Below, in pieces: positions 8,563-58,405 of a stretch of DNA of 64,000 nucleotides (its first letter is position 1; each line of letters opens with the position of its first letter). Source of the stretch: Blepharisma stoltei ATCC 30299 (lineage: Eukaryota > Protista > Ciliophora). The stretch is from NCBI GenBank assembly GCA_965603825.1, contig CBFDEM010000040.1, positions 620,001 through 684,000 on the forward strand. The letters are read 5' to 3'. Made by a program: the position numbers and the translations under genes. The notes below the pieces were generated by a model that saw only the letters and a list, made by a program, of their open reading frames with translations, did not search any database and was not told where the DNA came from.

Positions 8563-9297
8563 TGAATTAATAAGTATTAATGTCAACAATTTTAAGAAAA
8601 ATCAACTCTTTTAAAATAATGATGATGAGGTTGAGAAATTAGAGAAAACTCAAAATTACCAGGAAAATGGCAAATAAGATTTATAAAAACGGATTAATAT
8701 GATAATCTAAAGGCTACCTTTTTCTTTATATCAAGGCAATTTTAAACAGCAAATGTCATATGCAGAATTCAACAAATTTTTTTGTAAAAATTTAATCACT
8801 TTTTAAAAAATAATTTTTATTCCAAAATTTTATTTACTTTTTTATTGCCTTCTCACAAAAGTCAATTGGCTTTAACTAACTAATTTTATTTTTTATTATT
8901 TATTAAAAATGCAATTTTATATTAAAATATTATTGCCGAAAAAAGCAAATTCAATCCTACTCAAGATTCTTTAGTTCTAATATACTAAAGTATTAAAATG
9001 TTGATAAGGAGTATATGATCAGTATATTTAGCATATAATAATAATAATAAAATGTCGATATGTCAGGATATTTATAAATATTCGAGATACCTAATCGCAT
9101 GAATGATAATAACTCAGAGTTTAGATTAGTATATTTATGTTTTTGTGATTTGAAAGCCAAAAGATATTCATGATGAATCGATCAAAAATTTCGTTTATAT
9201 GTAATACAAAAACATTATTGAGATTATTATGAAATATAATTTGAGTTCAATCATTTCTTAATGATTTTCTAGGTTTTATATTTTTAAGTTATGATAA

Positions 9298-17199: not shown

Positions 17200-17591
17200 T
17201 ATTTATTAATTATTAATCCAAAAACTGATTTATGGCTGATTTCATATAAGCTTAAAAATTAAAAAAGAAAATATGCTAGATAAATAGAAAAATGGACTTT
17301 ACCATAATTAAGGGATTTTCTATTTTCTATAATTTATAGTAAGTCTTTGATCAGCTATAGCAACATAAAACAATTATCGATAATTAATAGCTATAAAGCA
17401 TTCTCCCCAGGCTTTCTTAAAAACATCAAAGGTTTTCTTTCATTATTTCTATATCATTTATACGTTTTTTCTCCAAACACATGCCTAATAAATAAAAATA
17501 AAGGGCATTCGCTATTATATAGCAACAAATAATCTATTAATTTTAGTAGCAGGTGCTATAAAAGACACTATAGCAAAATAATACAAAAATA

Positions 17592-31319: not shown

Positions 31320-34300
31320 TTATGCTTTCGGTATTACTCTCCACTGGAAGACGCATTGATCATCTCCTCCAGTACTAAACAAATACCTATCATCCACACT
31401 GAACTTAACATTCGTCACATGTGAGCTATGCCCTCTTCCTAAAGCAGACTCAGCTCCTTTAACAATGCATGGATACCTAAACACCTTAACAGTACTAAAA
31501 TCGTCACCAGTCGCTAACAAGTAATATTCATTATTTCCAAACTTTCTCTTACTTCTATCAGTTGCATTCACATCAGTCCCATCTGAATAAGGCGGATAAA
31601 TTTCTTGAACTGGCCATCCAATCACACAGCTCCAAGTAGCCCAGTGCTCATCTCTCAGCGACGTGGCCCCAGAAGTTATTTGTTTCCCTGTATTTGCATC
31701 CCAAAACAGCAGCTCATACGCTCCACAATTAGAATGAAGGAAATTTGAGTCCTGAGACCAGTCAAAATGAGTGATATAAGAGCTATGTCCTTTGCAGATT
31801 GCAATACGATTAAAATCAGAAACCGTATAAATGTCAATAAAATTGTCATGAGACCCTACAGCAAGCTTTTCTCCGTCTGGCGAAAATTTCACATCAGAAA
31901 TTTCTTCTTTTCTGTTTTTCTTTTGAGTGATGATTTCCCAAGAATTTAGGTCTATAATGGTAAATGAGCCGTCTTTAAAGCCAACAACAAGCATTGAGCC
32001 GCTTGGATGGACACCTATGCATCTAGCCATGGCTGAGATTGGGATTTCAATATTTTCAGTGAATTTAAGCACGTGGATTTGGGATCTGCTTTCAATGTCC
32101 CAGAGTCTTAGAGTTCCATCATCAGAAGCTGTGATATAGTTTCTTCTGTTAGGTAAAACTGCGAGTCCCCACACTTCATTTGTGACAGTTCTGCCTCTTG
32201 AAGGAGTATAATGACCTACAACTAGTCTTCTAAAGTCGTTAGATCTTATATTGACTTCATAAATTTCTGAGCCATATGTTCCAACAGCTAGCCATTCACC
32301 ATCTCCTGATATGCTTGCAGCTCTAATTAATGGACAAATAGACCCGTGCTGATTGAAATCAAATGATTTTAACTTTCTTAATGTAAGGTCCAGAATATGC
32401 ACAAGTCCATCTTTGCCGCCTGACACAATTGTTCTTGTATCAGTCCATAAGCTATCGACCGCTTTTTGGTGGACTTCATAAGCTTTAACTGCTCCAGTTC
32501 CTTTCCATTTAATAATCTCTCCAGATCCTGCTCCTGTATACACATCAGCTCCAATTGCAATCGCGCTTAACAAATTTGTATTATTTTTTCCAAAAACTCC
32601 TTTTTTGCCAGTCACAGTTCCTCCAGCAAGACTTCAGGCTTTATAATGCTTGATCCCAACAGTCACAAATGAGCTTTCGGCAGTAAAGACTACGGTAAGG
32701 ATTTTTTCTCTATCTCCTTTAACAAAACAAATAACAGCCCCTGTTTTCAAATTAAAGACCGCTACATTGTGGTCATCTCCAGCACTAACAGCTACAAGCA
32801 TCCCTCCAGAAGGAGAAAATGCAAGAGCAGCTACACCATTTTCAATCGGTTTCTTAAACTGTGCTACTGGCATTAATGAAGAAGTATCCCACACATAAAT
32901 GCTTGGCCTCCTTCCTACTTCTCCTGTAGCTGCTAATTCTTTATTAGGGCTTAAGGCAAATGCAGTGACATCATCGACATGTTTATTGAAAAATGACTGA
33001 GAATGGGAGTCTCTTTCATAAATAATTCCAAGTCCAGCAGCATGATATATAAGTCTTCCGTCAGGGAGATATAATAAGTTGTTTCTGCAGTCTTTTCCTC
33101 TATAGCCATGGACAAATTCTAACTCAATGTCAACAGCTGGGGCGAGTTTTTGGTTCCTAGTAGGTCTTTTGAAATCTGAAGGAGCTTTTAAGGCACCAAT
33201 CCAAGGTTTGGTCGCCATAAATTCATCGCCTTGGCCTGCTTCTTCGAGCTTAAAAAAGTCTTCTTCGGCGTTTCCGTCTTCAAGCTTAGCTTTAGCTTTT
33301 TCTTTTTTGTCAGCTTTCTTTTGAAGGATTTCTGTTGTGGTGATTTCTTCAGGCTCTTCTGATTTTTCTTCTTCGGCTTCTTCTACTTCATGAGGCTCAT
33401 TTATGTCAGTTTTCCATATTAAAATACTTTGCTCTGCAATGGAGATAAGGTAATTATCATCAGCAGAAAACCTTAAAGAGGAGGCTGGAGATGAGTGGCC
33501 TTTAAATGACTTGCAAGCTTGTTTTGGGGCTACTGCTGGGTATTTATAAAGGTTAATCCTTTGATTTTCGTCACTTGTAGCAAGTAGTTTTCCATTGTTC
33601 GAGCTGCAGACTGCAATGGTCTTAAGACCTTCTTGTCAGGCTGATTGTGATTGCCATCCTAATGGACAAGTCCAGTTTCTCCATTCAAGATCTTTGATGG
33701 ATTCAAAAGGAACAGAAGACTGAGAGTTTATGCTTATAAATCTGAGCTCAGCTTTGGAAGTGTTAACGGCGAGAATTGAGGAATCTGAAGACCAGGATAA
33801 ATGCTCAATACCTCCTGATATGTCTGGCTTAATTTCTGAAGTAATGGATAAATTGCTGCCACTTATTGTTATGATTTGGATATCGCCTCCTGCAAATCCT
33901 AAGGCGATTTTTTCATTATCAGGGGAAAATTTAACTGATGTTGCTTCAGAGCCAGCTGACTTATGGAATAGATGCGAGGCAGAAAGGTTTGGTAGATTTC
34001 CAGCATCAAATAGGGTTAATTTTCCTGATGCTACGACTGCTGCTAAGAATAGTCCATTTGAAGACCAGTCAATAGACACAAATGGTTCTTGTGAATCAAT
34101 CGAAGCAATTGCAGATTTTTGATCAATATCCCACAATCTCAATGCTTTATCTCCTCCACACGTAGCAAAAATACTTGCTACCCTTGGATGAGCCGCCAAT
34201 CCTTTTAATTCTCCTTCAAAGCTTCCTGGGTTTATCACACTTGCATTTTCCCATCCAGAAATATTCAAAATCTGTGACGATTTCGTTCCTACCAGGACAT

Positions 34301-37300
34301 TTCCTTCCCCATTTACATCAATTGACCTAATTCCATAACTAGTAAACTGACTAATCGCAAAGCTTCTTAAGCTTCTAAACGAGCTGTCCCATTGCTTCAC
34401 AGTCCCTTCAGACCCTCCACTAATAAGCTGTTGCTCAAGGGCACACAAAGAAAGGACGCTTCCATCATGAGCTTTTATGTATCTTTCTAAATTTTTCCCA
34501 TCCCATATAAACAAATTCCCTTGCTTTGTCCCAGTCACTAATTTCTTATTATAAAAAACTCCACAGTATTGTTCTTCAAAAGCTTTTACAGCTGAATTTC
34601 CTTTAGTTGCTGTGCAGTTTTGGCTAGCTGCAGTAAAGAATTTTATAAATTTCGGCCCAAAAATTACCAATTCAGTATTGGAAACAAATAAAGCCCCATT
34701 AACCAGTCCTTTATCCACTTTAGTGCTGCAGATTAGCCTGTTATTTTGCCAGTCATAGACTGCCAGACTATGGTCACTATCAGTGCCTACTGATAAAAGT
34801 TTGGCTCCATTTGGTGAAAAATTGAGAAATCTTATAGAACTTGTATGGAAACCCGCAAGTGAGCAGACATTTTGCATAGTTTCTGAGTCCCAGATGTGGA
34901 TTTCAGGCTTAGAACCTTTAAGCTTGCTATATGCCCCAGTTGCTACTAGCTTTTTGTTAGGGTGTAATGCAAGAGAAGTGACTTCTCCTGTATGGAGTTT
35001 ATAATATTGCTGAATTTTTGACGATGGGTCTAATAGAACTCCAAATGTGGATGCAGGGTAAATTATTTTTCCATCACTGAGGAATTTCAAATTATCTCTA
35101 GGAGCATTGTATCCAAACGCATGGAAAATATCAATTTCTTCGTCAGGCATTTTGGCAAGGGCTGGAATTGCTGAGAATCCTGTAGGTGAAGCAGTTTTTA
35201 CTTCATCTTGCCATGATAAGATGATTTCTGATTTAATAGGCTTTTTGGCGACTGATTTTTCTTCAGCTTGCTCTATAGGCTCTTCTTGGATTTCTTCAGC
35301 TCCTTCTTCATGAAAACTCCATTGGAAAATAGCTTTATCACCTCCTCCAGTTGTAATTAGTTTATCTCCAAGGAACCTACAATTAGTGACATGAGCTGAA
35401 TGTCCTCTATATGCATTGAACCCTGACCCTTTAACTGCACATGGATACTTAAACAGTTTTACCTGCCCAAAGTCATCAGCAGTCGCTACCACTCTTCTCG
35501 AAGGACTTCTATTCAATGCATTTACATCAGTCCCATCAGAGCAAGGTGGCCAAATTCCTTGAACAGGCCATCCAATAATGCAAGACCAAGTTTTCCAGGC
35601 TTCATCTTTAAATTCAGATGAGCCACCAGGTAGGTGTTTTCCATTAGTGATATCATGATAAAGGATTTCATAGCTCATACTATTTGACTGGATAATATGT
35701 CCATTCATAGAAAAGTCAATATGAGTAATTGCAGAGCTGTGACCTTTCATTTTATGGAGAAGTCTGAAGCTGCCTACTTCGTAAATAAATATTAAAGCAT
35801 CGTGAGCTCCTACAGCTAAATGAGAGCTGTCAGGGGAAAATTTTATTTCTGAGATTGGCTTTTTGCGGTCATGGGCTGAGTGGAGGATTTGTAAGGATTC
35901 TGAGTTGTAGATGAGAATTTTGCCTGACTCGAGACCGACAGCTATTAAGTCACCATTGGGAGAATAGTCAACTGTCATACAAGCAGCTTCTAGCTTAGCT
36001 TGGTTTATTTGGATCTTTGTAGATGAGTCCCAAATAGATAGTAAGCAGTCTTGTCCAGCAGTTGCAAATTTAGTTTGGCTAGGATGTGTGGCAAGTCCCC
36101 AGAGTTCTTTATCATAATGCCCTTTCATTACTATCCTGCTTTCTGCGCCAGAAATTTCATATATTTCACTAGCTCTAGTCCCTACCAAAATCTTCCCATT
36201 TCTTCCTTCAAATACACTTCTAATCTTTGGTAGCAGACTACCTGCAGATTTTATATCAAAACTTTGTATTTTGGCCAATCTTTCGTCTAGAATATGGATC
36301 ATCCCATCATTTCCTCCTGAAATAATTCCATTTCCTGCAGGTCTCTGTGATAGACAAATAATGCTTGACTCGTGGACTTTGACGGCATCTCCTAGCGTAT
36401 TTTCATTCCATCTAAAAATGCAGCCATTAAAAGCACCAGTCACTGGAGTGCCACTAATAAAGCCGATACTTACTAAAGCTTGTTGCTGAGTATTTGGGGT
36501 CTTATTCCAGCCAATACCTTTTTTCGCTGTAATTGTATTGCTGTTTATGGTCAAAACTTCATAGACTTTAACTCCACAAGCAATAAGTTTATTAGGAATG
36601 GTAGGGTGGAACTTTAAATCCATAAAATTGTCTTTACCAGCCTTTCCAGTCGCAGACACATTTTGCATAGCTCCTGATTTTCCTGTTGTTTTATTTATGT
36701 CATAAATCACTACACAATGGTCATCGTCAGCGCCCATAGCGGCTATTTGGCTTCCGTCAGGAGAAAAAGTGATTATCGAGATACCTTTGGTAAAAACTCC
36801 TTTAAAAGTTTTGAGGCATTCCATTGTTTCTGTATTCCAGACACATAATAAAGGACTTTTTCCGATTTCACCTGTGGCTGCAAGAGTCCCATCTGGGCTT
36901 ATATCAAAAGAAATGATATCGTCAGTGTGGGCAATAAAATGGTTTTGGGTATTAGCAGAAGTGTTAAGGGCAACTCCTATAGCGGCTGTATGATAAAGGA
37001 CGTCTCCATTTGCAGTGTATTTTATATTATTTCTGACATCATGACTTCTGTAGCCATATACATATTCAAGTTCTAAATTTGCATCTGGAGGGTCGTCATC
37101 TCCAGCTTTTCTTCTATACCCAGTTGGAACTGAAGATCTAACTGCTGCTTCCCATGGTTTTACAGCTCCAAACTGATCGCCTTCTCCTACTTCAACAATA
37201 TCAAAGTAATTTTCTTCTCCGTTTTTCACTTTTTCTTGTACCGCAGTTCTCTTGAACTTTTTCTTGTCAGTTTCATTTTCTAAGTCACTGTCAACTTCTG

Positions 37301-37883
37301 GGCTTTCTTCACTTCCCCAGTTAGGGCGTTTATCTTCAGTCGTAATAAGTTCAAGCTTTTCAAGTATTTGCACAAGCTCTATATCTCGTGTAATAAAGCT
37401 GACCCATTCCCTAATGGAGATTGTATTATCATGATTGACATCAACTTTGTCAAATACCCTATGAGTATGCTCATTTAGGTGGTCAGGTGAGAAGGCTGGT
37501 GCTCCTGTCATATGGCAAAGGGCATTCATCCCAGTTGTGAGCATCACAAGAAGCTCATCAAAAGAAATAGAAAGGGAATGATCTAAATCGTATAGCTGGA
37601 ATAGCAGATTTGCTTTGGTTTCTAGTGATGAGTCTGAAATGATTATCAAGCCTCCTATAAGCTCATAAACATCAATTTTTCCGCTTGAGGATGGGTCAAA
37701 GAGCTGCCCTACTAGTTCACATTGAGATGGGGAAAGTGATAAAACTGGCTCAATTTCTTGAACTGATAAAGAACGAGAAGATTCAAAAAGTTTGGAGTTT
37801 TCATAGAGAGCGTTGATTTGGTCAGAGGTAAGGACAAGAGACTTTAAGTCTGGATGGACATGATGAGATTCGCTGATACCCAT
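31320..37883 (-). CDS. EML5/EML6-like WD40 (HELP/TAPE x3) microtubule-associated protein with N-terminal EF-hands (~2,187 aa)
   Basis: Three HELP-like starts (LELEYVYGYRSHDVRNN, IDIFHAFGY, IELEFVHGYRGKDCRNN), WSCIIGWPVQ, EF-hands DLDHSLSISFDE and DVNHDNTISIRE. ORFs join in frame through TGA 33636 and 32634. Confidence 0.9.
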
Positions 37884-39873: not shown

Positions 39874-42800
39874 TTAAAAATTATAGCTCACTCTTAATAA
39901 TTTTTTGCCTTCAGCTCCTGGGTTAATTTTTCTTTTTAATGTCTCTTCTTCATACGTCTTATCTATATTAGCTAAACTTGGGTCTTTGTTAATAATTTTT
40001 TCGATTAACTCATCAATATTGTTGCCACCAAGCTTATCCCTTGCCTTTTCTGTTAAGTCCATCCTGGAATTATCTCTAGATAATATTGAAGATAGGGGCA
40101 GTATTCCTCCACTTGCCGTGCTAAAGTGATTGTCTATCTCTTCAGCATCACAATAGCTAAATTGATGCTCCTTAATGAATACTGTCAATTTTCTTGTGCT
40201 AGAACATTTGTAAAGCACAATGCCTCGAATGATTACACTACGAAAATGACTGTGTTTAAATCTGAAGGCAATGTCCATATATTTCTTGGAGTAGATCTGT
40301 CAAAGAGCATCATTAGCTCTTTCAAGTACTTCCTTATAATTAGCAACGTGTAAGATTTTAAATTCATGAATAATGATGGTAGAGGATTCTCCTGGATTTG
40401 GAATAAAAATACCATCAGTTTTTTCCCCGAAATTATTAGCTGTCCCTATATGCAATTTATATTTAGGTCTTAAGGCTTGCTCTAATGACATAAGCACTAT
40501 TCCTCCTGTATAAGTTTGGAAAAAAGTTTCATTTATGTTTAAATTGCTGTCTATTTTATTAAGTAGCTCAACTTGAATAAGACTCTCGAGCTGCAATTTG
40601 TCCTCTAAACAATCAATATATTTATTTATCCACATAAAACGATTAATATTGTTTTCCCCAATTGCTTTATCGATTCATGTGTTAAACAATTTTTCATAAA
40701 AATATATCTTTATTTCTTTATTTGGGACTAGATAGACTTTATTTCTCATAAGGTGTCAAGTATCCAGCATGAAGCAGTAGCACACAAGCATCATCTTTAG
40801 CTCTTATTTGATCATATATTGGCCTATCTAAAACGAGATATCCAGCCTTCATTATTTCAAATATTTTATGATTAGGATCAATAGTATTAAACACAGAAAT
40901 AAGCAGGTCTGGGTCATGTTCATTACGCCAATAAGTTTGTAGAGGTGCTATATTCTGCACTGAAGCGCTTGATAAACAATTCATTACCGACAAAGGGTTG
41001 TAAATATTTTGTCTCCCAACCGTTTACCCACCATATCATTGTTTTATCAATTGCTTCTGCTGTATTAAATGTGCAAGTGATTTATGAGCCAAATGGCGTT
41101 CTATTAATTCATCAACTTCCGGTTCAGTGAATCCAAAGTAATCAGATAAATAATTATCCAAAACAGTGGAAGAAATAAAATGCCCTGAAGGAAATATTTC
41201 AATCAGCGGATAATAATAAACTCCAGTTACAATTATTTTCCTAATATAATAATGCTGCCCACAGACTAGTGAACCCAGCATTATTCTTAGAAGATCTATC
41301 ATGTTATGCCGCTGCTCTATATCAGTCCCTGCGTTTCTAATATTACAATCATAGTCATCGATAATTAAAATAACGCTCTGATTATGAATCATATTTAGCA
41401 TGATAGCCAGGTCTTGCAATACTTTATATATGTTTATTTTAGACCTATTTGATAGATATAGTCTAAATAACTTCACTTCCTCAGGTAAATCTATTTTATT
41501 TTTATCAATAATTTTTTCCAAACCTTCAGTTGTTAGATCCCTAAAATTTGTATATATTGAAGAATCTCTTAATTTTTGCTCTAAATATTGATGATATGAA
41601 AGAACATGCTCACGTAATGTTTTTGATAGCGCAATCTTGATCTCTTCATAATAAATTTCAGCATTTGAGGTTCAAATCTTAGGAAATACAAATAAAATAG
41701 TCGGGATTTTTCCAGCGAACATTGTATACTTCTCTTTATCTGCAATCATTATGTTTTTACGCCTTCTATCGTCCGAGTCGCTTTTATCAGTGCTATTTCT
41801 TTTCCCAGTAAATAAATATAAATTTAAGAATTGTTCGTGTCAATTTATCTGAGGATTTAGGAATGCTTGGAGCATGCTCATGTTAAATGATTTACCCCAA
41901 CCTGTTGGTCTAGTAATAGCAATATGTGTATTATTGTCGTCTAAAATTGCCTTTATAAGCATTGTTTTGTCAACAATAATAGTGTCTTCGTCGACTGCTC
42001 TTTTAAAACTTTGAATTGTAGAGTTTATCTTACAATTTTTTTTGACCTTAATGAGTGATTGATATGTCGAAGGCAATTCAGTTGGTGTATTTAATAGATC
42101 AGAATCTGATTCTCCTTTTTCCTTGAATGAATCGAGAAATTGAAGTGCATCATCTAATTTATTATTGTCTTGGTACATTGATAATACACACAATTGGCTT
42201 ATATTCAGTTTCTTTGCTAAAAATCCTTCTCCACCTTCCAAAATCGGCCATAATGACAGTTTTGCAATAAGCTCGTTTAAAATTGCCTTTTCTATCATTT
42301 TTAGTAATTCCGAACTAAAATTGTTTCTAAGACTCTCAATGTTTTCCTCCTCAGTAAGATTGATTCCTAAATCTTCAAAGATAGCCAATATTTTATTACT
42401 TCAGTTCGCATCAAAGTATGAAAATTCATTTAAATAGTTGCAATTTCCTGTGGAAGTCAGCATTATTGCGTTGAATATCAACCATAGCCAGCTTTGGGAC
42501 GTATTCCTACTCTGCTTGATGCTGAGCGAATCGTTTATTATAGCTAATGGGAAAAGCCCTCCAATGGTATATAAATCTCCATTAGAATTTTTATATGAAA
42601 TTTGTGTTTTCAATAAAAATTTTACCAAGGCTGGCAAATTATAATTATTACCAGACGAATCGACCATATAAATTAACTCAGAGGAGTTAGACAGAGGCTC
42701 TCCATCAAGGCTTGTATAGTTTTTGGGAATAATTACCATTGATTGCCATATATAATTTTCTTTAGCTTGTTCACCCGGCTGATTTTTGTCATTTATATTC

Positions 42801-43078
42801 CAAAAAGAAACAATAGGCTTTTTTAGTTCTTCACAGTCCCTCCTGACTATTTTTTCGAGTTGTGTCAGGCAAATTAATATACCATTAATTTCATCACTAG
42901 AGGCGGGGGAATAATTGAATATAGCATCTATGCTTTTAATATGGACTCTGCCTTTGTAAATTGATTTGAGCACTCTTTTAATGTCATAAGCAGATAAGCA
43001 GCATTCAGTTGAGCTTAAGTAGTCAGAACTTTGAAATCTTTTAAAAACCTCATAAAGGGGCTTTTCCAAACTTTCCAT
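39874..43078 (-). pseudogene. Copy A: pseudo-protease + AAA-ATPase-like + PD-(D/E)XK nuclease gene, disrupted
   Basis: IVDKT, RPTGWGKSFNMSML, IIDDYD, FGFTEPEV, LLLHAGYLT, KTDGIFIP..IIIHEFK, ALWQIYSKKY. Premature TAA at 41024-41026 and a +1 frameshift near 40740. Confidence 0.8.
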
Positions 43079-43909: not shown

Positions 43910-46900
43910 TTATTTTTTTCCCCTTTTGGTTCCTTCAGCTCCTGGGTCAAGTTTTCTTTTTAATGTCTCTGCTTGATGTGTCCTGTCCATATCAGCTAAA
44001 CTTGAGTCTTTCCTTATAAGTTTTTCGATTAATATACTAATATTTCTCCCGCCAAGTATATCCCTTGCCTTTTCCGTAGATTCAGCACTACATTTATCTC
44101 TACACAATGCTGAAGATAGGGTCAGTATTCCTCCATTTATCGTGCTAAAGTGCTTATCGATCGCTTCAGCAATATCATAATTAAATTTATGTTCCTTAAT
44201 GAATACTTTCCAACTTCATTCAGGAGGGTTTCTGTAAAACACAATACCTCGAATAATCACACTACGGAAATGACTATGTTTCGAGTGTAAGGCAATATCT
44301 ATATATTTCTTGGAGTAGATCTGCCAAAGAGCATCATCAGCTTTTTCCTGCACTAAATCATCGTAAGCAAATTCTAATTTTTTAAGTTCATGAATAATGA
44401 TAGTAGAGGATTCTCCTGGATTTGGAATAAAAATGCCATCAGTTTTTTTGCTAAACTTATTAGTTTCTATATACAATTTATATTTAGGTCTCAATGCTTG
44501 CTCTAATGCTATAAGAGCTATTCCTCCTGTATAAGTTTGGAAAAAAGTCTCATTCTTACTGCTATGGTCTTTTATCTTGTCTAGTAGATCAGTTTGAATA
44601 AGATTTTGAAGCTATTCTTTATCCTCTAAGCAATCAATATATTTATTTTTCCACGTAAAATGATTAATATTATCATTCTTAGCTACTTTATTGATTCATG
44701 CCACAAATAATGTTTCATAAAAATATCTTCTTATTTCTTTATTAGGGACTACATAGACTAAGTTGTGTTACTTATTTTCATAGGGTGTCAAGTATCCAGC
44801 ATGAAGCAGTAGCGCACAAACATTATCTTTGATTCTTATGTCCTGATATAATGGCCTATCTAAAGCAAGATACCCAGCTTTTATTCTTTCAAATATTTTG
44901 TTATCAGGTTCAATAGTATTGAATACTGAAATGAAAAGCCTTTCGCCATCTACATTATGCCAATATGTGTGGAGAGGTGCCTGATAAATCTGAGAAGCGA
45001 TTGATAAGCAACTTAGTATTGAAAAGGGGTTATAAATTTTTTGTCTTCCAACCCTATACCCATCATATCATTGTTTTATCAATTTTTTCTGCTCAACTAT
45101 ATTTGTATGTTGGTCTTGTACCAAATATTGTTCAAGTAATTCGTCAACTTCGGATTCAGTAAAACCAAAAAATCAGAGTAAAAATTATTTAAAACCGTAA
45201 AAGGAGTAAAATTTTGACTAGGAAATATAGCAAGAAGCGGATCATAATAAACTCCAGTTACAATTATTTTCCGGATATAATATAAATCTTGATAAACTAG
45301 AGGATAAACTATATCTCTTAAAAGCTCTCTAGTTTCTGTTCAAACTCTCTATTTGCCGCTGTCCGTTTATAATTACTATCGTAGTCATCTATAATAAAAA
45401 TGACCGGTTCATTATGAATCATATACAGCATTCTGGCCAGGATATTCAATGCTATGCATATATTTATTTGAGAAAAATCTGATAGATAAAGTCTATATAA
45501 CCTTATTTCCTTAGGTAATACTATTTGATTTTGATCAATTATTTTTTCCAAAAAAAATTTGATTGTTGCACCCTTAAAGTCTACTCTTATTGAAGAGTCA
45601 CTTATTTTTTGTTCTAAATATTGACGATATGAAGAAATATGCTCTCATAATATCACTGCTATTGTAAGCTTGATTGCTTCATACATTTCAGCATTTGAAG
45701 GATAAATCTCGGGAACTTGAAATAAAATAGTAGGAATTTTTCCTGCAAATTTTCTATACTTACCATCATCTATTTTCATAATTTTTTTACTTTCCCCACC
45801 AGTAAATAAGTATAAGTTTGCGAATTCTTCAGACTCGCCTCTCTGAGGATTTAGAAATGCTTGAAGCATACTCATGTTCAGTGATTTGCCCCAACTTCTT
45901 GGTCTAAGAATAGCAATTTTATAGGTAGAATCTTCTAAAATTGCTTTTATAAACAAAGTTTTGTCGATATAAATATTGCCGTTGTCGACTATATGTTTGA
46001 AATCTGCACATGAAGTATCGATCGAGCAATTGGCTTTCACCTTAATTACTGAATGAGGCGTTGGAGGCGATTCATCTCTATTTATTCTTGAGGAAATTGG
46101 AGTCTTAAATATATCATGTTCTATTTCTTGGCTTTTTCTTAATAAGTCTATAAATTGGAGAGCATCATCCTCTTTGTTATTGTTTTGGTAATCTGATAAT
46201 ACACACAATTGGGTTATGTTCAAAGTTGATAAAAAGCTTACTTGATCTTCAAAAATCAACCATGAAGATAATTTTATATGTAATTCGCTTAAAATTGCCT
46301 TTTGTATCATATCTAATCATTGAGGACGAGGACTTATAATAAAATTTTCAATTTCTGCACACTTAGCAAAATTGATGCTTAAATCTTCTAAAGTAGCTAA
46401 TATTTTACTAGCTCAGTGAACGTCAAAATTTGAAAAATCGTTTAAATAGTTACAATTTCCCGATGAAATCAGCATTACTGTATTGAATATCAGCCATAAT
46501 CAGCTTTGGGAGGGATTTCCGTGCTGCTTAATGCTATATCACATATTATAGCTGATGGAAAAAATCCTCCAAAAGTATTTGATATCCCATTAGGCTTTGT
46601 ATATGGAATTTGTGCTTTCAACAAAAATTTCATCAAATCTGGCAAATTATAATTATTGCCCGATGAATCTACCATAAAAACTAACTCAGAGTCATTAGAA
46701 AAAGACTCTCCATCACAATTTGTATAGTTTTTGGGAATAATTACCATTAATTGCCATATATAATTTTCTTGAGCTTGTTAACCTCTCTGAGATGCATTTT
46801 TGTCACTTATATTGATCTTCCAAAACGAAACAATAGGCTTTTTTAGTTCTTTATTATCCCTCCTGACTATTTCTTCGATTTTCGCCATACAAGCTAGCAC

Positions 46901-47098
46901 CCCATTTATTTCATCGGAAGTGGCGGGAAAGTGATTTAAAGGAGTATCTATTCATGCAATATAGATTCTGTCGTGGTAAATTGATTTAAGCACTTCTTCA
47001 ATTCCATAAGCAGACAGGCAATATTCTGCTGAGCTTGAGCGGTCATAGCCTTGAAAATTCTTAAAGACATCATAAAGGCGCTTTTCCAAACTTTCCAT
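43910..47098 (-). pseudogene. Copy B: pseudo-protease + AAA-ATPase-like + PD-(D/E)XK nuclease gene, disrupted
   Basis: Same motifs (YIDKT, RPRSWGKSLNMSML, IHELK). Frameshifts near 46535 and about 45340, TAA at 44768-44770, TAG at 44612-44614. Confidence 0.82.
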
Positions 47099-48335: not shown

Positions 48336-51300
48336 TTAGCCCCCTCTGAAGAATTTTGTGCCTTCAGCTCCTGGGTCGGTTTTTCTTTTTAATGTCTCTT
48401 CTTCATATGTCTTATCTATATTAGCTAAACTTGGGTCTTTGTTAATAATTTTTTCGATTAAATCATCAATATTGTTGCCACCAAGCTTATCCCTTGCCTT
48501 TTCTGTGGAGTCTATCCTGCAATTATCTCTACACAATACTGAAGATTGGGACAGTATTCCTCCATTTGATGAACTAAAGTATTTGTCTATCTCTTCAGCA
48601 TAATCATAGTTAAATTTATGCTCCTTAATAAATACTTTCCAAATTCCTTGAGTAGGACTTCTGTAAAGCACAATACCTCGAATAATAACGCTACGAAAAT
48701 GACTATGTTTCAAGCGTAAAGCGATATCCATATATTTCTTTGAGTAGATCTGCCAAAGAGCATCATCAGCTTTTTCCTTCACTTTTTCATTGTGAGAAAG
48801 CTCTAATTTTTTAACTTCATGAATAATAATGGTAGAGGATTCTCCTGGATTCGGAATAAAAATGCCATCAGTTTTTCTACCGAACCTATTCGCTTCCCCT
48901 ATATGCAATTCATATTAGGTCTCAATGCTTGTTCTAATGCTATAAGAGCTATTCCTCCTGTATAAATTTGGAAAAAAGCCTCATTTTTGATGTAACAGTC
49001 AGTCATCTTATCAAGTAGCTCAACTTGAATAAGATATTGAAGCTGGTCTTTGTCCTCTAAACAATCAATATATTTATCTATCCATGTAAAAAGATTGATT
49101 TTATTTTTCTCAATTGCTTTATCGATTCATATCATAAACAATTTTTCATAAAAATATCTCTTTATTTCTTTATTAGGGACTACATAGACTAAGTTGTGTG
49201 ATTTATTTTCATAGGGTGTCAAGTATCCAGCATGGAGCAATAACGCACAAACATTATTTTCAATCCTTGTTTCCACATATATTGGTCTATTTGAAACAAG
49301 ATACCCAGCTTTCATTATTTCAAATATTTTGTTATGAGAGCTAATAGATTTGAATGCTGAAATGAAAAAATTTTCATCGTCATATTAAACCAAATGAGAT
49401 TCAAGTAATTTGTCAATTTCATATTCTGTAAAACCAAAAAAATCAGAGAAATAATTATTCAAAACAGTAAAAGGAGCAAAAGGTGCCCCGCTAAATATCT
49501 CAATTAGCGGATCATAACAAACTCCAGTTATAATTAATTTTTCGATATATCTAGGACGGTAAACTAGAGGATTCAACATCTCTATTATAAGGCGTATCAT
49601 TTTATGTCGTTGCTCCATATCTGCTGCCCCTGTAATATTGATATCGTAGTCCTCTACAATTAAAATAATGGGTTTTTCATGAATTCTATATAACATGATA
49701 GCCAAATCTCTCAATGCATCTAAATTTATTTTAGAGCTATCTGATAGATATAGTCTGAATTGGGTCATTTCGATTGGCAAATCTATTTTATTCTGATCGA
49801 TAATTCTTTCTAAATTTCTAATTTTAAGATCCTTAGTGTCTAGGGAAATTGAAAAATCTTTTATTACTTTTTCTAAATATTGGCGATATGAATGAATGTG
49901 CTGTTGTAATGTTTCTCATATGCTATATTTGATCGCTTGATGGTATTTTTCAATATTTGGATTTCTAATCTTGGGAAATGCAAATAAAATTGTAGGAATT
50001 GTTCCAGCTTTCTCTATATACTTCCCATTATCTGCATTTATTATATCCAAGTTATTTAAGCTACACCCAGTAATAAGTATAAATTTTCGAATACTCCATT
50101 TTTGCCTGCCTTAGGCTTAGGATTTAGAAATGCTTGTAGCATGCTCATGTTCAGTGACTTACCCCAGCCTCTTGGTCTCATAATAGCAATATTATCATAA
50201 TCTTGTTCAAAAAGTGCCTTTATAAACATTGTTTTGTCAACATAAAGTTCTCCTCCATCAATTATTTGCTTAAAATTTGAATTCTGAGTGCTGAACTTAA
50301 GATTTTTTTGACCTTAATAACTGAATGATATGTTGGAGATGATTCATTTTCATATAATCTTATTGAAGTTGGTGTATTAAATTGATAAGGATCTGATTCT
50401 TTGCTTTGCTTTAATGAGTCGATAAACTGGAGTGCATCACCCACTTTATTATTGTCTTGATACTCTGATAAGGCACATAATTGACTTATATTCAAATTAT
50501 TTGGTAAAAATTTTACTTGATCTTGCAAAATAGGCCATGATGATAATTTTGCATATAGCTCGTTTAAAATTGCCTTTTCTATCGTTGTTACCCATTTGAA
50601 ATCTAAATTGAATCATAAATTCTCAGATTTTTGCTCTAGAGAAAAATTAATGTTTAAATCCTCAAAAATGGCTAGTATTTTATTGATTCACTTCTCATCA
50701 AAATTTGAAAACTCTCTTAAATAGTTGCAATTTCCTGTTGAAATCAGCATTAATGTGTTGAATATCAATCATATCCAGCTTTGGGAGCAATTCTCGTGCT
50801 GCTTACTACTAAGCTTATCATATATTATAGCTGATGGAAAAAGCCCTCCAAAAGTATCTGTATTCCTCTCCGATTTTTCATATGAAATTTGTGTTTTCAA
50901 CAGAAATTTTAACAAACCTGGCATTTTATAATTATTCCCAGATGAATCGATCATAAAAACTAACTCAGAGGAGTTAGACAAGACTCTCCATCAAGATTTG
51001 TATAGTTTTTGGGAATAATTACCATTAATTGCCATATATAATTTTCTTCAGCTTGTCCACTTATCAGCATTGAGTTTTGGTCAGTTGTATTGATTTTCCA
51101 AATAAAAACAATAGGCTTCTTTAGTTCTTTATGATCATCCTTGACTATTTTTTCGATTTCTGACATATAAGACAGCACGCTAATGATTTTATTGATAGAG
51201 GCGGGAGAATAATTGATAGGAGTATCTGTGCCTTGTATATGGATTCTGTCACTGTAAATTGATTTAAGCACTTCTTTTATGCCATAAGCAGATAAAGAAT

Positions 51301-51366
51301 ATCTTTCTAAGCTTAAGCGATAATAACTTTAAAAAATTTAAAAAGGTCATAAAGCCCCTTTTCCAT
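48336..51366 (-). pseudogene. Copy C: pseudo-protease + AAA-ATPase-like + PD-(D/E)XK nuclease gene, disrupted
   Basis: RPRGWGKSLNMSML, IVEDYD, IHEVK. Frameshifts near 51330, 50982, 50305 and 48912, and an internal deletion at about 49383 removing the WYDGY/YNPF segment. Confidence 0.82.
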
Positions 51367-51885
51367 ATTTTGATTATATTTCATTTTTTGTTTACTAAAG
51401 GAAATAAGTTAAATTCATACTTCGAAATCAAGTCTTGAATAATAATTATGAATAAATAAGTTAGTGAAAATTTAATTAATTGTAGGATTAAGATTTTTTG
51501 CTGATCATATATAATTTGCTGCTATGTAAGTGAGAGGTAGCAGAAAGTAATCTTTATTTTTAAATAACAAGCAATAACAACTTGGCTCTAAAGCAGATGA
51601 TGCTTTCTATCATTACAACTTGCTCCAACATGTTAGTGCTTTTCGTCTACACACTAATTGCTCCAAATAACAATTTGCTTGGAGTTATGCTCATTATGCT
51701 TAGCTTTTTCAATTTAGCATCATAAATACTAAGAATGATAATAAATAACAAGGTTTCATAATGACTTATCATTTTCAAACTAAAAAGCAAAATTCTCGAT
51801 TATTAATGTAATTTATGGAATCTGATCCCCCACGTTTAAGGATAATCAGAATTTCCAAAATTAATAAATATTTATTTGTGAAGTC

Positions 51886-52555: not shown

Positions 52556-52779
52556 AATATATATTTCTTGGAGTAGATCTGCCAAAAAGCATCATCAGCT
52601 TTTTCCTGCACTAAATCATCGTAAGCAAATTCTAATTTTTTAAGTTCATGAATAATGATAGTAGATGATTCTCCTGGATTTGGAATAAAAATGCCATCAG
52701 TTTTTTTGCTAAACTTATTAGCTTCTATATACAATTTATATTTAGGTCTCAATGCTTGCTCTAATGCTATAAGAGCTAT
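52556..52779 (-). pseudogene. Isolated ~220-bp fragment of the PD-(D/E)XK nuclease core, near-identical to copy B 44300-44520
   Basis: About 3 mismatches versus copy B by eye; flanked by unrelated sequence. Confidence 0.85.
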
Positions 52780-54142
52780 AGGAAATTGGAGGCATGAGTT
52801 GTAAAGGGGAAATTCAGCTCAACTGTACGCTTGGGTGCAATGCTGCGGGTTCGATGGCTGAGCTGCTTCTTCACCGTATGTAAAATCTCTGAAAATTCAA
52901 AAAATCCTCTGAACGTCTTCCAAGCGGTTTACGACGCGCTCTTAATGCTTCTGATAATTTTCCAGCTCTTCAAAAATGGTTTCTGAACTGCTTGATTAAT
53001 CATTTTATGGAAGTTCACCATAATTGATTTTCAGGACGACTCTCAAAAAGGAATTAATCCTTGCATCATAATTATAAATAGATAAATTAAATAAATTGCA
53101 GGATAAAGGTTTTTGAATATAAATAATTTGTATATCTAGTTGAAAAATTTTTCTTATTTTTCATAAGGATTTAAAATTGGCTTTGACTAAGCATGGTGTC
53201 CATCATCAGAACAATTTTTTCAAAGCATCTTATCTTTATTCATTGAGATTATCATAGCTTTAATTGCCTTAAGCACTCTTCCTTATTTTGGCTGGCTGAT
53301 ATAATAAATATATTTCTCAGCTAAGGTTTGGTCTTCGGTGGGCTAACTTCGAGGATGTGATTTTATTATAACTGGCAAGTTTTGCTAGCATAAGTGCTAG
53401 ATACCACTTTGGTTATGATTAGAGGCTAGCTCAAGCATACTTCAAAGCTGGATATACCTAGTCTAAGACATCTTCTTTATGCTGCTTCACTACACTATGA
53501 TCAACTTTTTTAATTGAGTAATTTTATTGGTTTCCCAACGAGTTCAAGCATTACTTAGACAATTTTCTCAGACAGATGATCATTTTTTTGGCTAATATAT
53601 CGAAATTTTCGAAACCTGTGGATATTTATTTTTGCAAAAATTAATGCAGCAATAGAATATATAATTTTGCTAGATTCAAGTGAATCTTCCACTCTGAGGT
53701 CTGCTTAAACTGTTGTCTTGCGCCAATAGCAAGTTCATCTATAAGTTACTTTGAAAGCTTGTTGGCTAAAGCTTTGTATAAAGACTACATATTATTATTT
53801 GATAATGATACATATTTTATTATTCATTTTAGGTTGTGGGGAAAGTTAATTTTAAAATACTTATAAGATATTTTATACTTTGAAATGAATAAAAATCAAT
53901 TTATTCGCCTCCTTGCTCTTCAAGTGTCAATAATACGTCTTTAATGTTTCTAATGCGCATATAAATATTTAAAGGGATTCTATTTTTGAGTAATAATTTT
54001 GGATTTTCATTAAATGCTTTAATCCTCGGCATTTTTCGGAGCTATAAATAAATGTTTTAATTAATAGAAAACTTATTTTTTCTCTATGAGATTCTAATTT
54101 TCAGATTTTTATGACCGTGATAATCAATTAAAATTATTAGCA

Positions 54143-57100
54143 TTATTTTTTTTCCCTTTTGGTTCCTTCATCTCCTGAGTCATATTTTCTTTTTAATGTG
54201 TCTGCTTGATATGTTCTGTCCATATCAGCTAAACTTGAGTCTTTCCTTATAATTTTTTCGATTAATTCACTAATATTTCTCCCGCCAAGTATATCCCTTG
54301 CCTTTTCTGTGGATTCTGCACTGCCTTTATCTCTACACAGTACTGAAGATAGGACCAGTATTTTTCCATTTGTCGTGCTAAAGTGTTTATCAATCTCTTT
54401 AGCATCGTGAAAATTAAATTTATTTTCCTTAATGAATACTTTCCAATTTCCCTCAGGAGGGTTTCTGTAAAACACAATACCTCGAATAATCACTCTACGG
54501 AAATGACTATATTTCTCTCGTAAGGCAATATCCATATATTTCTTGGAGTAGATCTGTCAAAGAGCATCATCAGCTCTTTCCTGAACTTTATCATCGTAAG
54601 CTGATTCTAATTTTTTAAGTTCATGAATAATGATGGTAGAGGATTCTCCTTGATTTGGAATAAAAATTCCATCAGTTTTTTTGTTAAACTTATTAGTTGC
54701 CTCTATATACAATTTATATTTAGGCTTTGGTGCTTGCTCTAATGCTATAAGAGCTATTCCTCCTGTATAAGTTTGGAAAAAAGCCTCATTTTTACTGCTA
54801 CGGTCTTTTATCTTGTCTAGTAGATCGGTTTGAATAAGATTTTGAAGCTGTTCTTTATCTTCTAAGCAGCCAATATAATTATTCATTCACATAAAAGGAT
54901 TAGTATTATAATTGTTCCCTTCTTTATTGATCCATGAAACAAATAATTTTTCATAAAAATATCTTCTTATTTCTTTATTAGGGACTACATAGATTGAGTT
55001 TTTTGGCTTATTTTCATAGGGTGTCAAGTATCCAGCATGAAGTAATAGCACACAAACATTATCTTCAATTGTTGTGTCTTGACTTAATGGCTTGTCTAAA
55101 ACAAGATACCCAGATTTCATTATTTCAAATATTTTATTATGAGAGTCAATAGTATTGAATACTGAAGTGAAAAGCTTTTGGTCTTTTTTATTATGCCAAT
55201 ATGTTTTAAGAGGTGTTGCATTATGCTTCGAAGCACTTGATAAGCAACTTATTATTGAAAATGGGTTGTAAATTTTTTGTCTTCCAACTCTATAACCATC
55301 ATATCATTGCTTTATCAATTTTTTCTGCTCAACTATATTTGTATGCGAGTCTTGTGCCAAATAATGCTCAAGTAATTCATCAACTTCGGATTCAGTAAAA
55401 CCAAAAAATTCAGAGTAAAAATCATCTAAAACCGTAAAAGGAGTAAAACATTGATCAGAAAATATATCAAGTAGCGGATCATAATAAACTCCAGCTACAA
55501 TTATTTTCCTAATATATGCATTGATTGTACAAACTAGTGGATTAAGCATATATCTTAAAATCAATGTAGCTTCTTGTCTTTGCTCTGTATTTACCTCTGC
55601 CCGTTTATAATTACTATCGTAGTCATCTATAATTACAATAACCTGCTTTTCATGAATCATATACAGCATGGTAGCTAGATCATTCAATGCTGTATATATA
55701 TTTATTTCAGATCTATCTGATAGATAAAGTCTAAATAACTTCATTTCCATAGGTAAATCTAATTTTGCCTGATCAATAATTTTTTCCAAATCTTGAAGTG
55801 TCAGATTACTGATTGAAGAATGAATTATTTTTCCTTCTAAATATTGTCGATATGAGGAAACATGCTGCTGTAATGTTTTTCCTATTGCAGTCTTGATTTC
55901 TTCATGCATTTCAGTATTTGAAGGATTAATCTCGGGAAATGGAAATAAAATAGTAGGAATTGTTCCTGCAAAATTTCTATATTTACCATCATCTATTTTC
56001 ATAATTTTTTTGCACTTTTCATTATCTAAGTTGCCCAAATTAGTATTATTTCTTTCCCCTGTAAATAAGTATAAGTTTGAGAATTCTTCAGACTTGCCTC
56101 TCTGAGGATTTAGAAATGCTTGGAGCATGCTCATGTTCAGTGATTTGCCCCAACATCTTGGCCGAATAATAGCGGTTACAGAGCTAGAGTCTTCTAAAAT
56201 TGTCTTTATAAAAATAGTTTTGTCCACATAAATATTGCCGTTGTCGACTATATGTTTAAAATTTGCACTTGAAGGATTAAATGAACAATTTGGTTTTACC
56301 TTAATTATTCAATGGGGCGTCGGAGGCGATTCAACTTCATTTATACTTGTGGGAATTGGAGTTTTCAATAGATCTGAATCTAATTCTTGGCTTTTCCTTA
56401 ATGAGTCGATAAATTGGATAGCATCATCCTCTTTGCTATTGTTTTGTAACTCTAATAATATACACAATTGACTTATGCTCAAATTGTTTGCTAAAAAGCT
56501 TGCTTGATCTTCTAAAATTATCCATGATGACACCTTTGAATGAATCTCGGTAAAAATTGCGTTTTGTATCATGTTTATCCTTTCAGAACTAATAATAAAT
56601 TTTGAATTTTCTACCCACTTAGCAAAATCGATGCTTAAATCTTCGAGAATAGCTAATATTTTATTAGTTCAGTGCACGTCAAGATTTGAAAATTCATTTA
56701 AATAGCTACAATTTCCTGAGGAAATCAGCATTACTGTATTGAATATCAGCCATAGTCAGCTTTGGGAGGGATTCTTGTGCTGCTTAATGTTTAGTGTATC
56801 AAATATTATAGCTGATGGGAAAAATCCTCCAAAAGTATTTGATCTCCCATTAGACTCTGTATATGAAATTTTTGTTTTCAACAGAAATTTTAACAAAGCT
56901 GGCATTTTATAATTATTCCCAGATGAATCGACCATATAAACTAATTCAGAGGCATTAGAAAAAGACTCTCCATCAAAATTTGTATAGTTTTTGGGAATAA
57001 TTACCATTAATTGCCATATATAATTTTCTTGAGCTTGATGACCTCTCTGAGATGCATTTTCGTCACTTATATTGATTTGCCAAAAAGAAACAATAGGCTT

Positions 57101-57358
57101 CTCTAGCTCTTGACGATTAACCCTGACTATGTCTTCGATTTTCGCCATACAAACTAACACACCATTTATTTCATTGGAAGAGGCGGGAGAGTGATTTAAA
57201 GGAGCATCTACTCCTGCAATATAGATTCTGTCGTGGTAAATTGATTTAAGCACTTCTTCAATCCCGTAAGCAGACAGGCAATATTCTGCTGAGCTTGAGC
57301 GGTCATAGCCTTGAAAATACTTAAAGGCATCATAAAGGCGCTTTTCCAAAGTTTCCAT
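54143..57358 (-). CDS. Copy D (intact, 1071 aa): inactive CE-clan protease-like domain + AAA-ATPase-like (PF09820-type) + PD-(D/E)XK nuclease (PDDEXK_9-type) + basic tail
   Basis: All six ORF fragments are in one frame. The gaps were translated and contain only TGA, no TAA/TAG. No introns. Motifs: YVDKT, RPRCWGKSLNMSML, VIIDDYD, FGFTESEV, WYDGY, YNPF, LLLHAGYLT, VPNKEI, KTDGIFIP..IIIHELK, ALWQIYSKKY. Confidence 0.88.
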
Positions 57359-58405
57359 ATTTTGATTATTATTTTTAATTTTTTGGAGACCAAAATCGAT
57401 GTCGAAAAAAAGCCAATAAAATAAATAATTGTAAAATGTTGACAAACATGCAGAAAATCTATCAAAATTTATCTATATATTATAAAAAATTCGAAAAATG
57501 ATAAAAATTTGTAAAATAAAATAAGAGTGTTGTCAAAAAGTCAAAAGTTTGGAAAATTTGCAATCAAAAATTTATAGCTTGCCCACTTTGTTGATTTTCA
57601 TGATGATTATAATTTTTTCATTGGACTTCATGCAGTATAAAAATTAAGTCCTTAAAATAGTTTATTTTAATTTAATATCTAGGAGAAACCCTTATATAAG
57701 CTTTAATAATTTCAGATAATTACTTCTAGTTTTAGATAATTAGCTCAGAAATATTTTTGGAACTATTTTTTATGATAAATTGGATAATTTAGTAAGCTCA
57801 GGCTATATTATTTTTATTGGAATTAACATTTATTTCATCTCGTTTGATTGTGAATTCATGGAAATGTTAATTCATACTTCGAAATCAAGTCTTGAATAAT
57901 AATTATGAATAAATAAATTAGTCAAAGTTTAATTAATTGTAGGATTAAGATTTTTTGCTCATCATAATTAATTTGCTGCTATGCAAGTGAGAGGCAGCAG
58001 AAAATAATCTTTATTTTTAAATCAGAAGCTATTATGACTTGGCTCTAAAGCAGATAATGCTTTTCTGTCATTAAAATTTGCTTCAGCACGTTAATGCTTT
58101 CCGTCTACACACTAGTTGCTCAAAATAACAATTTGATAGGAGTTATCTCATTATTTAGCTTTTTCAAAAAATTTTTCATTTATCATCAATAATGGTAACA
58201 AATAGCTAGGTTTCGTAATGACTTATCATTTTCAAGCTAAGAATCAAAACTCTCAATTATTAATTTAATTATAAAATTTAAGCTTATTTTATTTATTTAA
58301 GATTTTATTAAGCTAAAAAAATTTAAGTTTAATCTATAGGATCTGATCTTCCATGCTTAAGGATAATGAGAATTTTTAAAAATAATAATATTTATTTGTG
58401 AAGTC

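Follow-up and report, generated by a model that had tools for sequence, protein, structure and literature searches.

The locus studied here raises the question of what kind of domain stands at the N-terminus of the proteins encoded by an array of minus-strand genes in the ciliate Blepharisma stoltei ATCC 30299. The array lies in a 64,000-nucleotide stretch of contig CBFDEM010000040.1 (positions 620,001 to 684,000 of the forward strand; hereafter the window, in which all positions without a contig or locus label are counted from the first letter). An earlier note, made from the letters of the sequence, had taken positions 56690-57358, which encode residues 1-223 of the gene that we refer to as copy 1, for a catalytically dead deubiquitinase (DUB) domain of the CE clan, joined to a nuclease. 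Our analyses indicated that the N-terminal ~235 residues are probably a true CE-clan member by fold and profile, and a pseudo-peptidase by loss of the catalytic His and Cys. The narrower claim, that the domain itself is a dead CE-clan domain, is very probable, as judged from sequence comparison and a structural model.

Fold and catalytic positions of the N-terminal domain

To determine the fold of the domain we used an AlphaFold2 model of the copy 4 domain (window positions 42404-43078, minus strand), which is intact and free of TGA codons; the alignment supplied for the prediction consisted of the stop-free pieces of its paralogues in the genome. The model had a mean predicted local distance difference test (pLDDT) score of 75 and a predicted template modelling score of 0.79. 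Exhaustive VIA-align comparison of this model with 48,161 PDB representative chains placed CE-clan structures at all of ranks 1-30 (Z 13.0 to 5.1, 133-170 residues aligned), and the first unrelated fold had a Z of 4.8. The closest structure was OtDUB (Z 13.0, 151 residues aligned, root-mean-square deviation 3.9), followed by RickCE (Z 11.8), the CidB DUB domain (10.6), Lpg1148 (10.3), SseL (9.8), African swine fever virus pS273R (9.7), ChlaDUB1/2 (9.3) and poxvirus I7L (9.0). Next came NopD (8.9), Ulp1 (8.8), SENP3 (8.6), NEDP1 (8.5), SENP1 (8.4) and SENP5 (8.3), and then XopD, the SdeA DUB, RavZ, AvrA, adenain and others, with Z from 8.1 down to 5.1. Foldseek was led by OtDUB, I7L, Ulp1, CidB, NopD, SseL and SENPs, at E values of only ~1e-3. 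In the model, the position of the catalytic His lies on strand 110-117, the Asp closes the strand after it (135-140), and helix 193-208 starts with the nucleophile position (copy 4 numbering). The papain-type, CE-clan-like fold that had been proposed from motifs was thus recovered by both structural comparisons.

The motifs on which the proposal was based, KPIV(S/F)(F/I)W.I, ENYIWQ.MVIIPK, (Y/F)M(V/I)DSSG and Q....SQSW(L/I)WLIFN, were present in all four copies in the window. A profile of the paralogues was compared with 1.84 billion representative proteins, and the matches were aligned back to it with hmmalign. It matched 138 representatives at E <= 1e-3, of which 71 were at E <= 1e-10 and 17 at E <= 1e-30, with E values down to 1e-47. 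The consensus of this family (KPIVMI.NT, GG.HWQ.CVILPKNY, FF.DSL, QQ..G.DCGWWAVYNA) carries the complete set of CE-clan catalytic elements, and the W, DS.G and Q...S motifs of the window proteins fall in the columns of HW, DS and Q..DCG of the catalytically complete homologues (residue counts are given in Table 1). In addition, a 51-member family profile searched against PDB sequences matched RickCE, OtDUB and the CidB DUB domain, at marginal E values of 0.0045-0.0055, with their HW, DSLG and QQ..CG lined up in the same places.

Against these columns, the window proteins lack the full His-Asp-Gln-Cys tetrad: the His is Ile114 and the Cys is Ser200, residue for residue as previously described and in each of the four copies, and Asp144 and Gln193 are kept. 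Because both the general base and the thiol are gone, no cysteine isopeptidase activity would be possible, which makes the domain a predicted pseudo-peptidase; we infer this absence of activity from the missing His and Cys. By descent and fold, as far as sequence and model allow us to judge, the N-terminal domain is a noncatalytic member of the CE clan, and the family to which it belongs is one without a Pfam model.

The lack of a Pfam model is reflected in the outcome of conventional searches. No Pfam family, PF02902 (Peptidase_C48) included, matched the N-terminal domain alone at E values up to 10, and PF02902 was found neither in the copy 1 piece (E up to 1) nor in full-length P0004, the public protein for copy 1, and nine relatives (E up to 0.01). 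A phmmer search of PDB sequences with the domain gave just a chance fimbrial match (E 0.25), a word-based search among 5.8 billion proteins retrieved nothing beyond the product of the window itself, and scans with NCBIfam (P0004, P0023, P0010 and P0009) and PADLOC (P0004, P0023 and P0010) returned nothing relevant. These nulls, together with the Foldseek E values, are what would be expected if the motifs resembled those of CE-clan peptidases by chance and the domain was unrelated to them. However, 30 consecutive CE-clan leaders in an exhaustive structural search, homologues at E values down to 1e-47 with HW, DS and Q..DCG in the same columns, and the profile matches to RickCE, OtDUB and CidB refute a chance resemblance, which we regard as scarcely credible. 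Look-alikes in a protein atlas (Peptidase_C48 and ElaD clusters, and hypothetical proteins of giant viruses) were treated as leads only and were not used as evidence.

The array and its paralogues in the genome

The window has a G+C content of ~30-37% and contains very long open frames when TGA is read as Trp and TAA and TAG as stops. The somatic genome of B. stoltei ATCC 30299 has been reported to be 41 Mbp, with UGA = Trp and introns of 15-16 bp (PMC9942806); the assembly that we searched comprised 41.46 Mb in 64 contigs, with the window on contig C40. The contig that holds the window also encodes an EML/HELP microtubule protein and a protein disulfide isomerase and is therefore eukaryotic, and a bacterial, Mollicutes or organelle origin of the TGA = Trp window was ruled out by these genes. 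In copy 1, the minus-strand range 56690-57358 begins with a Met codon at 57358 and holds one in-frame TGA, and the frame is open over 1,109 codons (54143-57472) when TGA is Trp. This reading is supported by copy 4, which has TGG at the corresponding site, and by P0004 (1,071 residues), which is identical to the copy 1 translation with TGA as Trp.

Searching the window with the copy 1 protein by tblastn identified four minus-strand copies and one fragment (Table 1). Although the motifs of the N-terminal domain occur in all four, as the earlier note had stated of its four-copy array, only copy 1 is intact, as copies 2-4 contain stops and/or frameshifts. Copy 3 has additional stops at 45187, 44770 and 44614, and the annotated product of copy 4, P0003, is 684 residues. 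Introns were ruled out as the cause of the breaks in copies 2-4 because in-frame TAA/TAG stops are also present. The four copies are paralogues with 58-79% identity to one another, so their agreement does not amount to four independent observations. Independent support for the motifs comes instead from ~20 more divergent paralogues (34-45% identity) and from the 138 database representatives.

Across the genome, ~20 loci encode the N-terminal domain, at 34-67% identity. The catalytic His was absent from every one of these paralogues, its position being occupied by Ile, Thr, Ala, Leu or Phe, or by Ser in a set referred to as the C58 subgroup. Ser was at the Cys position in every paralogue of the main alignments, outside of which the C58 subgroup falls. 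Trp115, the Asp-Ser pair and the Ser at the nucleophile position were invariant among the aligned paralogues, including those at 34-45% identity. When the genome was searched with a profile derived mainly from active members, no locus with a complete tetrad was recovered, but the C58 subgroup emerged.

Two sets of paralogues differ from the remainder in ways that are worth recording. The C58 subgroup (82776-84443, 90072-91281 and 120295-121716; L063-L065) is a third and more divergent set with the same architecture, and has Ser, Asn, Gln and Gly at the four catalytic positions (GSWDLLVILPS, YRNS, QN.GGWWALF). A further subgroup (L008, L009 and L011; C27:628271-635946 and C14:60712-64362) is without the ~120-residue linker, such that the pseudo-peptidase domain nearly abuts the 'FVDKT' of the ATPase.

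A conserved Ser at the nucleophile position could also mean that the domain is still an enzyme, either a serine-type hydrolase or an acyl-transferase, with Ser200 as nucleophile and a different general base. The presence of this Ser in the aligned paralogues, the retention of Asp144, and the existence of relatives with H-D-Q-S, i.e., with the Cys to Ser change alone (P0011), would all be consistent with such an enzyme. However, none of the paralogues in the genome has a His at the catalytic position, no other His common to all paralogues was seen in the alignment (judged by eye and not by a formal column count), and the Gln of the oxyanion hole is variable. We consider a serine enzyme very improbable.

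The degree of constraint on the domain was estimated from ten paralogue pairs. Nei-Gojobori ratios of nonsynonymous to synonymous substitution rates (dN/dS) were 0.33-0.62 for the N-terminal domain and 0.27-1.0 for the rest of the protein, and amino-acid identity was higher in the N-terminal domain than in the rest in every pair. Based on these sequence comparisons, conservation of the N-terminal domain matches or exceeds that of the rest of the protein, and the selection acting on the domain is purifying, although not strong.

There is moderate evidence that copy 1 is transcribed and lacks introns. In four runs of a single study, contigs covered positions 54106-57351 at 99-100% identity with no joints, and none covered the intergenic DNA at 53800-54100 or 57416-58335; the covered gene body and bare flanks, without joints, form the pattern expected of a transcriptome. 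A separate covered island (53134-53795) lies between copies 1 and 2, was present in 4/4 runs, and had approximately one third of the word depth of copy 1.

Table 1. Positions of the array genes, of the domains of copy 1 and of the residues at its catalytic sites (window coordinates).
Feature	Position	Strand	Basis or remarks
Copy 1, sole intact array gene	54146..57358	-	1,071 residues; stop codon 54143-54145; without stops or frameshifts by tblastn
Predicted CE-clan pseudo-peptidase domain of copy 1, residues 1-235	56654..57358	-	AlphaFold2 model of the copy 4 domain, fold matches, profile homology
Ile114-Trp115, CE-clan catalytic-strand His-Trp position	57014..57019	-	His in 83 and Trp in 111 homologues
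Asp144-Ser145, 'DS' motif, catalytic Asp kept	56924..56929	-	Asp in 104 and Ser in 98 homologues
Gln193, position of the oxyanion-hole Gln	56780..56782	-	Gln in 90 homologues; kept in the 4 window copies
Gln199-Ser200-Trp201, in place of Asp-Cys-Gly	56756..56764	-	Asp/Cys/Gly in 83/81/101 homologues; Ser200 is the nucleophile position, Trp201 is encoded by TGA
Linker, residues 236-355, pseudo-peptidase to ATPase	56294..56653	-	Paralogue alignment
AAA-ATPase_like module (PF09820)	55079..56293	-	Pfam; Walker A GKS (Lys405), Walker B-like IIDDYD
PD-(D/E)XK nuclease-fold domain, C-terminal 311 residues	54146..55078	-	Glu886, Asp896, Glu913-x-Lys915; AlphaFold2 pLDDT 78
Copy 2, pseudogene	48354..51372	-	At least 5 frame changes, stop at 49387; N-terminal domain motifs kept but over three frames
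Copy 3, pseudogene	43913..47098	-	TAA in N-terminal domain at 46780; frame changes near 46500, 45340 and 45200
Copy 4, truncated gene	39901..43078	-	Stop at 41026 and frame change near 40746 remove the nuclease
Remnant of a fifth copy, 222 bp	52558..52779	-	87% identity to copy 1 residues 868-942 (part of the nuclease domain), tblastn

Elsewhere in the window, two tandem paralogous open frames of ~2,400 codons each (1342-8610 and 9970-17202, both minus strand, TGA = Trp) contain Laminin_G_3 or concanavalin-like domains, with no other Pfam match in the pieces tested. A 2,187-codon gene on the minus strand (31320-37883) has repeated HELP motifs and EML-type beta-propellers, indicating several EML units per protein.

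Relatives in other protists and in bacteria

Homologues that retain the catalytic His and Cys were identified in the database matches, e.g., P0023 and P0139, both of which have a CE domain, an AAA-ATPase_like module and a C-terminal module, with H-D-Q-C intact. They are encoded on protist-like metagenome contigs that read in the standard code. The neighbors of P0139 are genes for a tubulin-tyrosine ligase, a kinesin, Utp12 and a WD40 protein, and P0023 adjoins a eukaryote-sized ribosomal S5 gene and a second copy, its tandem neighbor, which is H-N-Q-C. As these contigs are eukaryotic and the tetrad is intact, the architecture occurs in active form in other protists. The notion that it was special to this organism was therefore not upheld, since CE, ATPase and nuclease domains occur together, with an intact tetrad, on protist-like metagenome contigs. 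Other relatives of the same architecture had lost individual positions (H-D-I-C in P0038, H-D-Q-S in P0011) or were heavily substituted. On a protist-like metagenome contig (L022:6499-13027), a CE + AAA-ATPase_like gene with H-D-Q-C stands in tandem with another that has H-N-Q-C, both being read in the standard code, so tandem arrays of the family also exist outside of this genome.

In a maximum-likelihood tree of 22 CE + ATPase proteins, the members from this genome formed one clade (SH-aLRT 100), and the tree required the Cys position to switch between having and lacking Cys three or more times. These changes are best read from the sequences as repeated losses, regain of a full tetrad being implausible. 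All ~20 paralogues in the genome lack the residues needed for catalytic activity and belong to one clade, a pattern consistent with one loss that preceded expansion of the family.

The family also has bacterial members. P0010 (L025:8001-15251) is a 2,416-residue protein matched at E 8e-45, with an intact tetrad and a weak NACHT match, and is encoded on a bacterial conjugative element with a TrwC relaxase, a TraG-type coupling protein, HicAB and RecD2. When species-representative genomes were scanned, relatives were recovered from one bacterium of the Holosporaceae, one uncultured member of the Legionellales and several gammaproteobacterial metagenome-assembled genomes. The readable bacterial open frames were 1,484-2,477 residues in length, and three of the four had ankyrin and/or leucine-rich repeats (LRRs); one further relative bears an OTT_1508-type deaminase domain. 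Giant ankyrin/LRR proteins are typical of secreted effectors, and by their sequences these bacterial relatives have the effector-like architectures of intracellular bacteria. Some of the lineages include protist symbionts, according to reviews. A bacterial origin of the ciliate genes is plausible from these sequence relationships.

A more specific scenario would trace the family to modules of effectors or toxins in intracellular bacteria of the Holosporaceae, Legionellales or Rickettsiales type, the kind of source that also gave rise to the cytoplasmic incompatibility (CI) factors, and now act as a host-encoded ATPase-nuclease guided by ubiquitin or a ubiquitin-like protein (Ubl), or else as a selfish toxin-like element. 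If this were so, the dead CE domain might recognize a ubiquitin-like tag carried by invading symbionts or viruses, or by the chromatin of the developing nucleus, and thereby license DNA cleavage. We regard this scenario as improbable.

The attached ATPase and nuclease, known systems and a possible role

The remainder of the copy 1 protein supports its description as an ATPase-nuclease. PF09820 matched residues 365-625 of P0004 with 83.9 bits (cut-off 26.1), and this match was likewise obtained in genome coordinates. The top two VIA-align matches of the C-terminal domain were 7esz_A (the CinA-CinB complex, Z 9.8) and 7esy_B (CidB ND1-ND2, Z 8.9), followed by EcoRV, DrdV, the R2 endonuclease, BpuSI, McrC, MGME1 and AddAB. 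The intact D-ExK motif that had been described for this domain is present as E886...D896...E913-x-K915, and the E...D...ExK residues are largely conserved in the family. PF08011 (PDDEXK_9) had no match in P0004, and the sole match in the genome was on another contig; because PF08011 is unmatched, the assignment of the nuclease rests on its fold and motif.

The comparison with Wolbachia CidB that the earlier note had drawn is now better founded, as the C-terminal domain has the CinB and CidB nuclease domains as its best matches, and the N-terminal domain matches the CidB DUB (7fiu). Both types of domain in the CI factors therefore recur in the window protein. However, their order is reversed, as had been pointed out: CidB has N-terminal tandem PD-(D/E)XK domains and then an active C-terminal Ulp1-like DUB, whereas the window protein has its CE domain at the N-terminus, then the linker and AAA-ATPase_like module, and a single PD-(D/E)XK domain at the C-terminus. 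The AAA-ATPase_like module between the two is absent from CI factors, and sequence identity between the window protein and CidB/CinB is 13-16%. CidB has an active DUB and degenerate nuclease motifs, so the pattern in the window protein, with a dead protease and an apparently intact nuclease motif, is inverted. The resemblance to CidB/CinB is one of parts and not of membership.

Similar comparisons can be made with other known systems. The bacterial CE-clan DUBs OtDUB (Orientia, 6ups), RickCE (Rickettsia bellii, 5ham), SseL and ChlaDUB1/2 are among the best structural matches of the N-terminal domain, and RickCE and OtDUB are also its best matches in the profile search of PDB sequences, with HW, DS and QQ..CG aligned. 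Unlike these DUBs, the window domain is without the His and Cys, is encoded in the nucleus of a ciliate with TGA = Trp, and is joined to an ATPase-nuclease instead of effector repeats. The Ulp1/SENP peptidases (Peptidase_C48) share the fold and the order of the catalytic elements; the window domain differs from them in having neither a PF02902 match nor the catalytic His and Cys. DUF1703 proteins, which combine PF09820 with PF08011, are expanded in Cardinium, Simkania and Rickettsia and have no known function (PMC6387759). The window proteins are like them in the PF09820 match, in a PD-(D/E)XK fold with E...D...ExK, and in occurring as multi-copy sets of divergent paralogues, but they have an additional N-terminal CE-clan domain and linker, lack PF08011 and are encoded by eukaryotic nuclear genes. 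Pseudo-deubiquitinases are known, such as the MPN- subunits Rpn8 and CSN6 and inactive ubiquitin-specific proteases (USPs), in which a protease fold minus its catalytic residues is likewise kept as a noncatalytic module in a larger machine. Those have JAMM and USP folds, whereas the window domain belongs to the CE clan. A search of the full-text literature found no prior description of a CE-clan pseudo-peptidase fused to an ATPase-nuclease.

What the domain might do can be considered from the residues that remain. In Ulp1/SENP structures, the Trp beside the catalytic His helps clamp the Gly-Gly tail of the substrate. The window domain has kept this Trp, the DS motif and a Ser in place of the nucleophile, which suggests that a tail may still be docked. 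The kept cleft would most likely dock the extended C-terminal tail of ubiquitin or a Ubl, or some other peptide, and leave it uncut. Such docking might then recruit or gate the attached AAA-ATPase_like module and PD-(D/E)XK nuclease. We tentatively speculate that recognition of ubiquitin or a Ubl recruits or gates the nuclease, which is a possibility and not our expectation.

Several points weigh against the interpretation of the domain as a maintained CE-clan pseudo-peptidase. The alignment behind the AlphaFold2 model contained paralogues only, and the last 12 residues and some loops of the model are of low confidence. The four runs that cover copy 1 were presumed to be RNA by guess, and they were available as contigs, not reads. 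The oxyanion Gln position varies among paralogues (Gln, Leu or Met), which suggests a drifting cleft. The dN/dS ratios of 0.33-0.62 correspond to only moderate constraint, and some of the copies compared are pseudogenes. Lastly, three of the four copies in the window are broken, so that the family is also decaying locally.

The last three of these points are also consistent with the domain being a relic, that is, a dead protease fold that serves as a structural or oligomerization scaffold for the ATPase-nuclease, recognizes no ligand, and belongs to a decaying gene family. In that case the pseudogene or truncated state of the window copies, dN/dS ratios that are relaxed relative to core genes and the variable Gln would be unsurprising, as would the Ser, Asn, Gln and Gly at the four catalytic positions of the C58 subgroup and the three or more changes of catalytic Cys state within the CE + ATPase family. 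However, in each paralogue pair the N-terminal domain is better conserved than the rest of the protein, and Trp115, the Asp-Ser pair and the Ser that replaces the nucleophile have been kept down to 34-45% identity, which a pure scaffold would not need. We consider a relic rather unlikely.

CE-clan DUBs, DUF1703 ATPase-nucleases, CI-factor domains and pseudo-deubiquitinases are all kinds of protein that were already known. What is new is the combination: in a nuclear multigene family of a ciliate, a CE-clan pseudo-peptidase is fused to an ATPase resembling that of DUF1703 proteins and to a PD-(D/E)XK nuclease resembling those of CI factors. A family of CE-clan peptidases that is unmodelled by Pfam has been delimited, and it is common to heterotrich-like ciliates and to effector-like proteins of intracellular bacteria. 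Within the fixed architecture of CE, ATPase and PD-(D/E)XK domains, the state of the catalytic Cys has changed at least three times and the domain has been kept. In the same organism, only one of the PiggyBac paralogues is catalytically complete (PMC9942806). The active (P0023 and P0139) and dead (window) versions of the CE domain represent natural controls for the role of this domain on the nuclease. In addition, Wolbachia CI factors supply the best or nearly the best solved relative for each of the two terminal domains, which provides research on CI and symbiosis with a eukaryote-encoded relative of both types of CI-factor domain. If the domain does prove to be a reader of ubiquitin or a Ubl, it would represent an unusual means of aiming a eukaryotic nuclease; if it is not a reader, these genes would still constitute a well-documented family of pseudo-enzymes.

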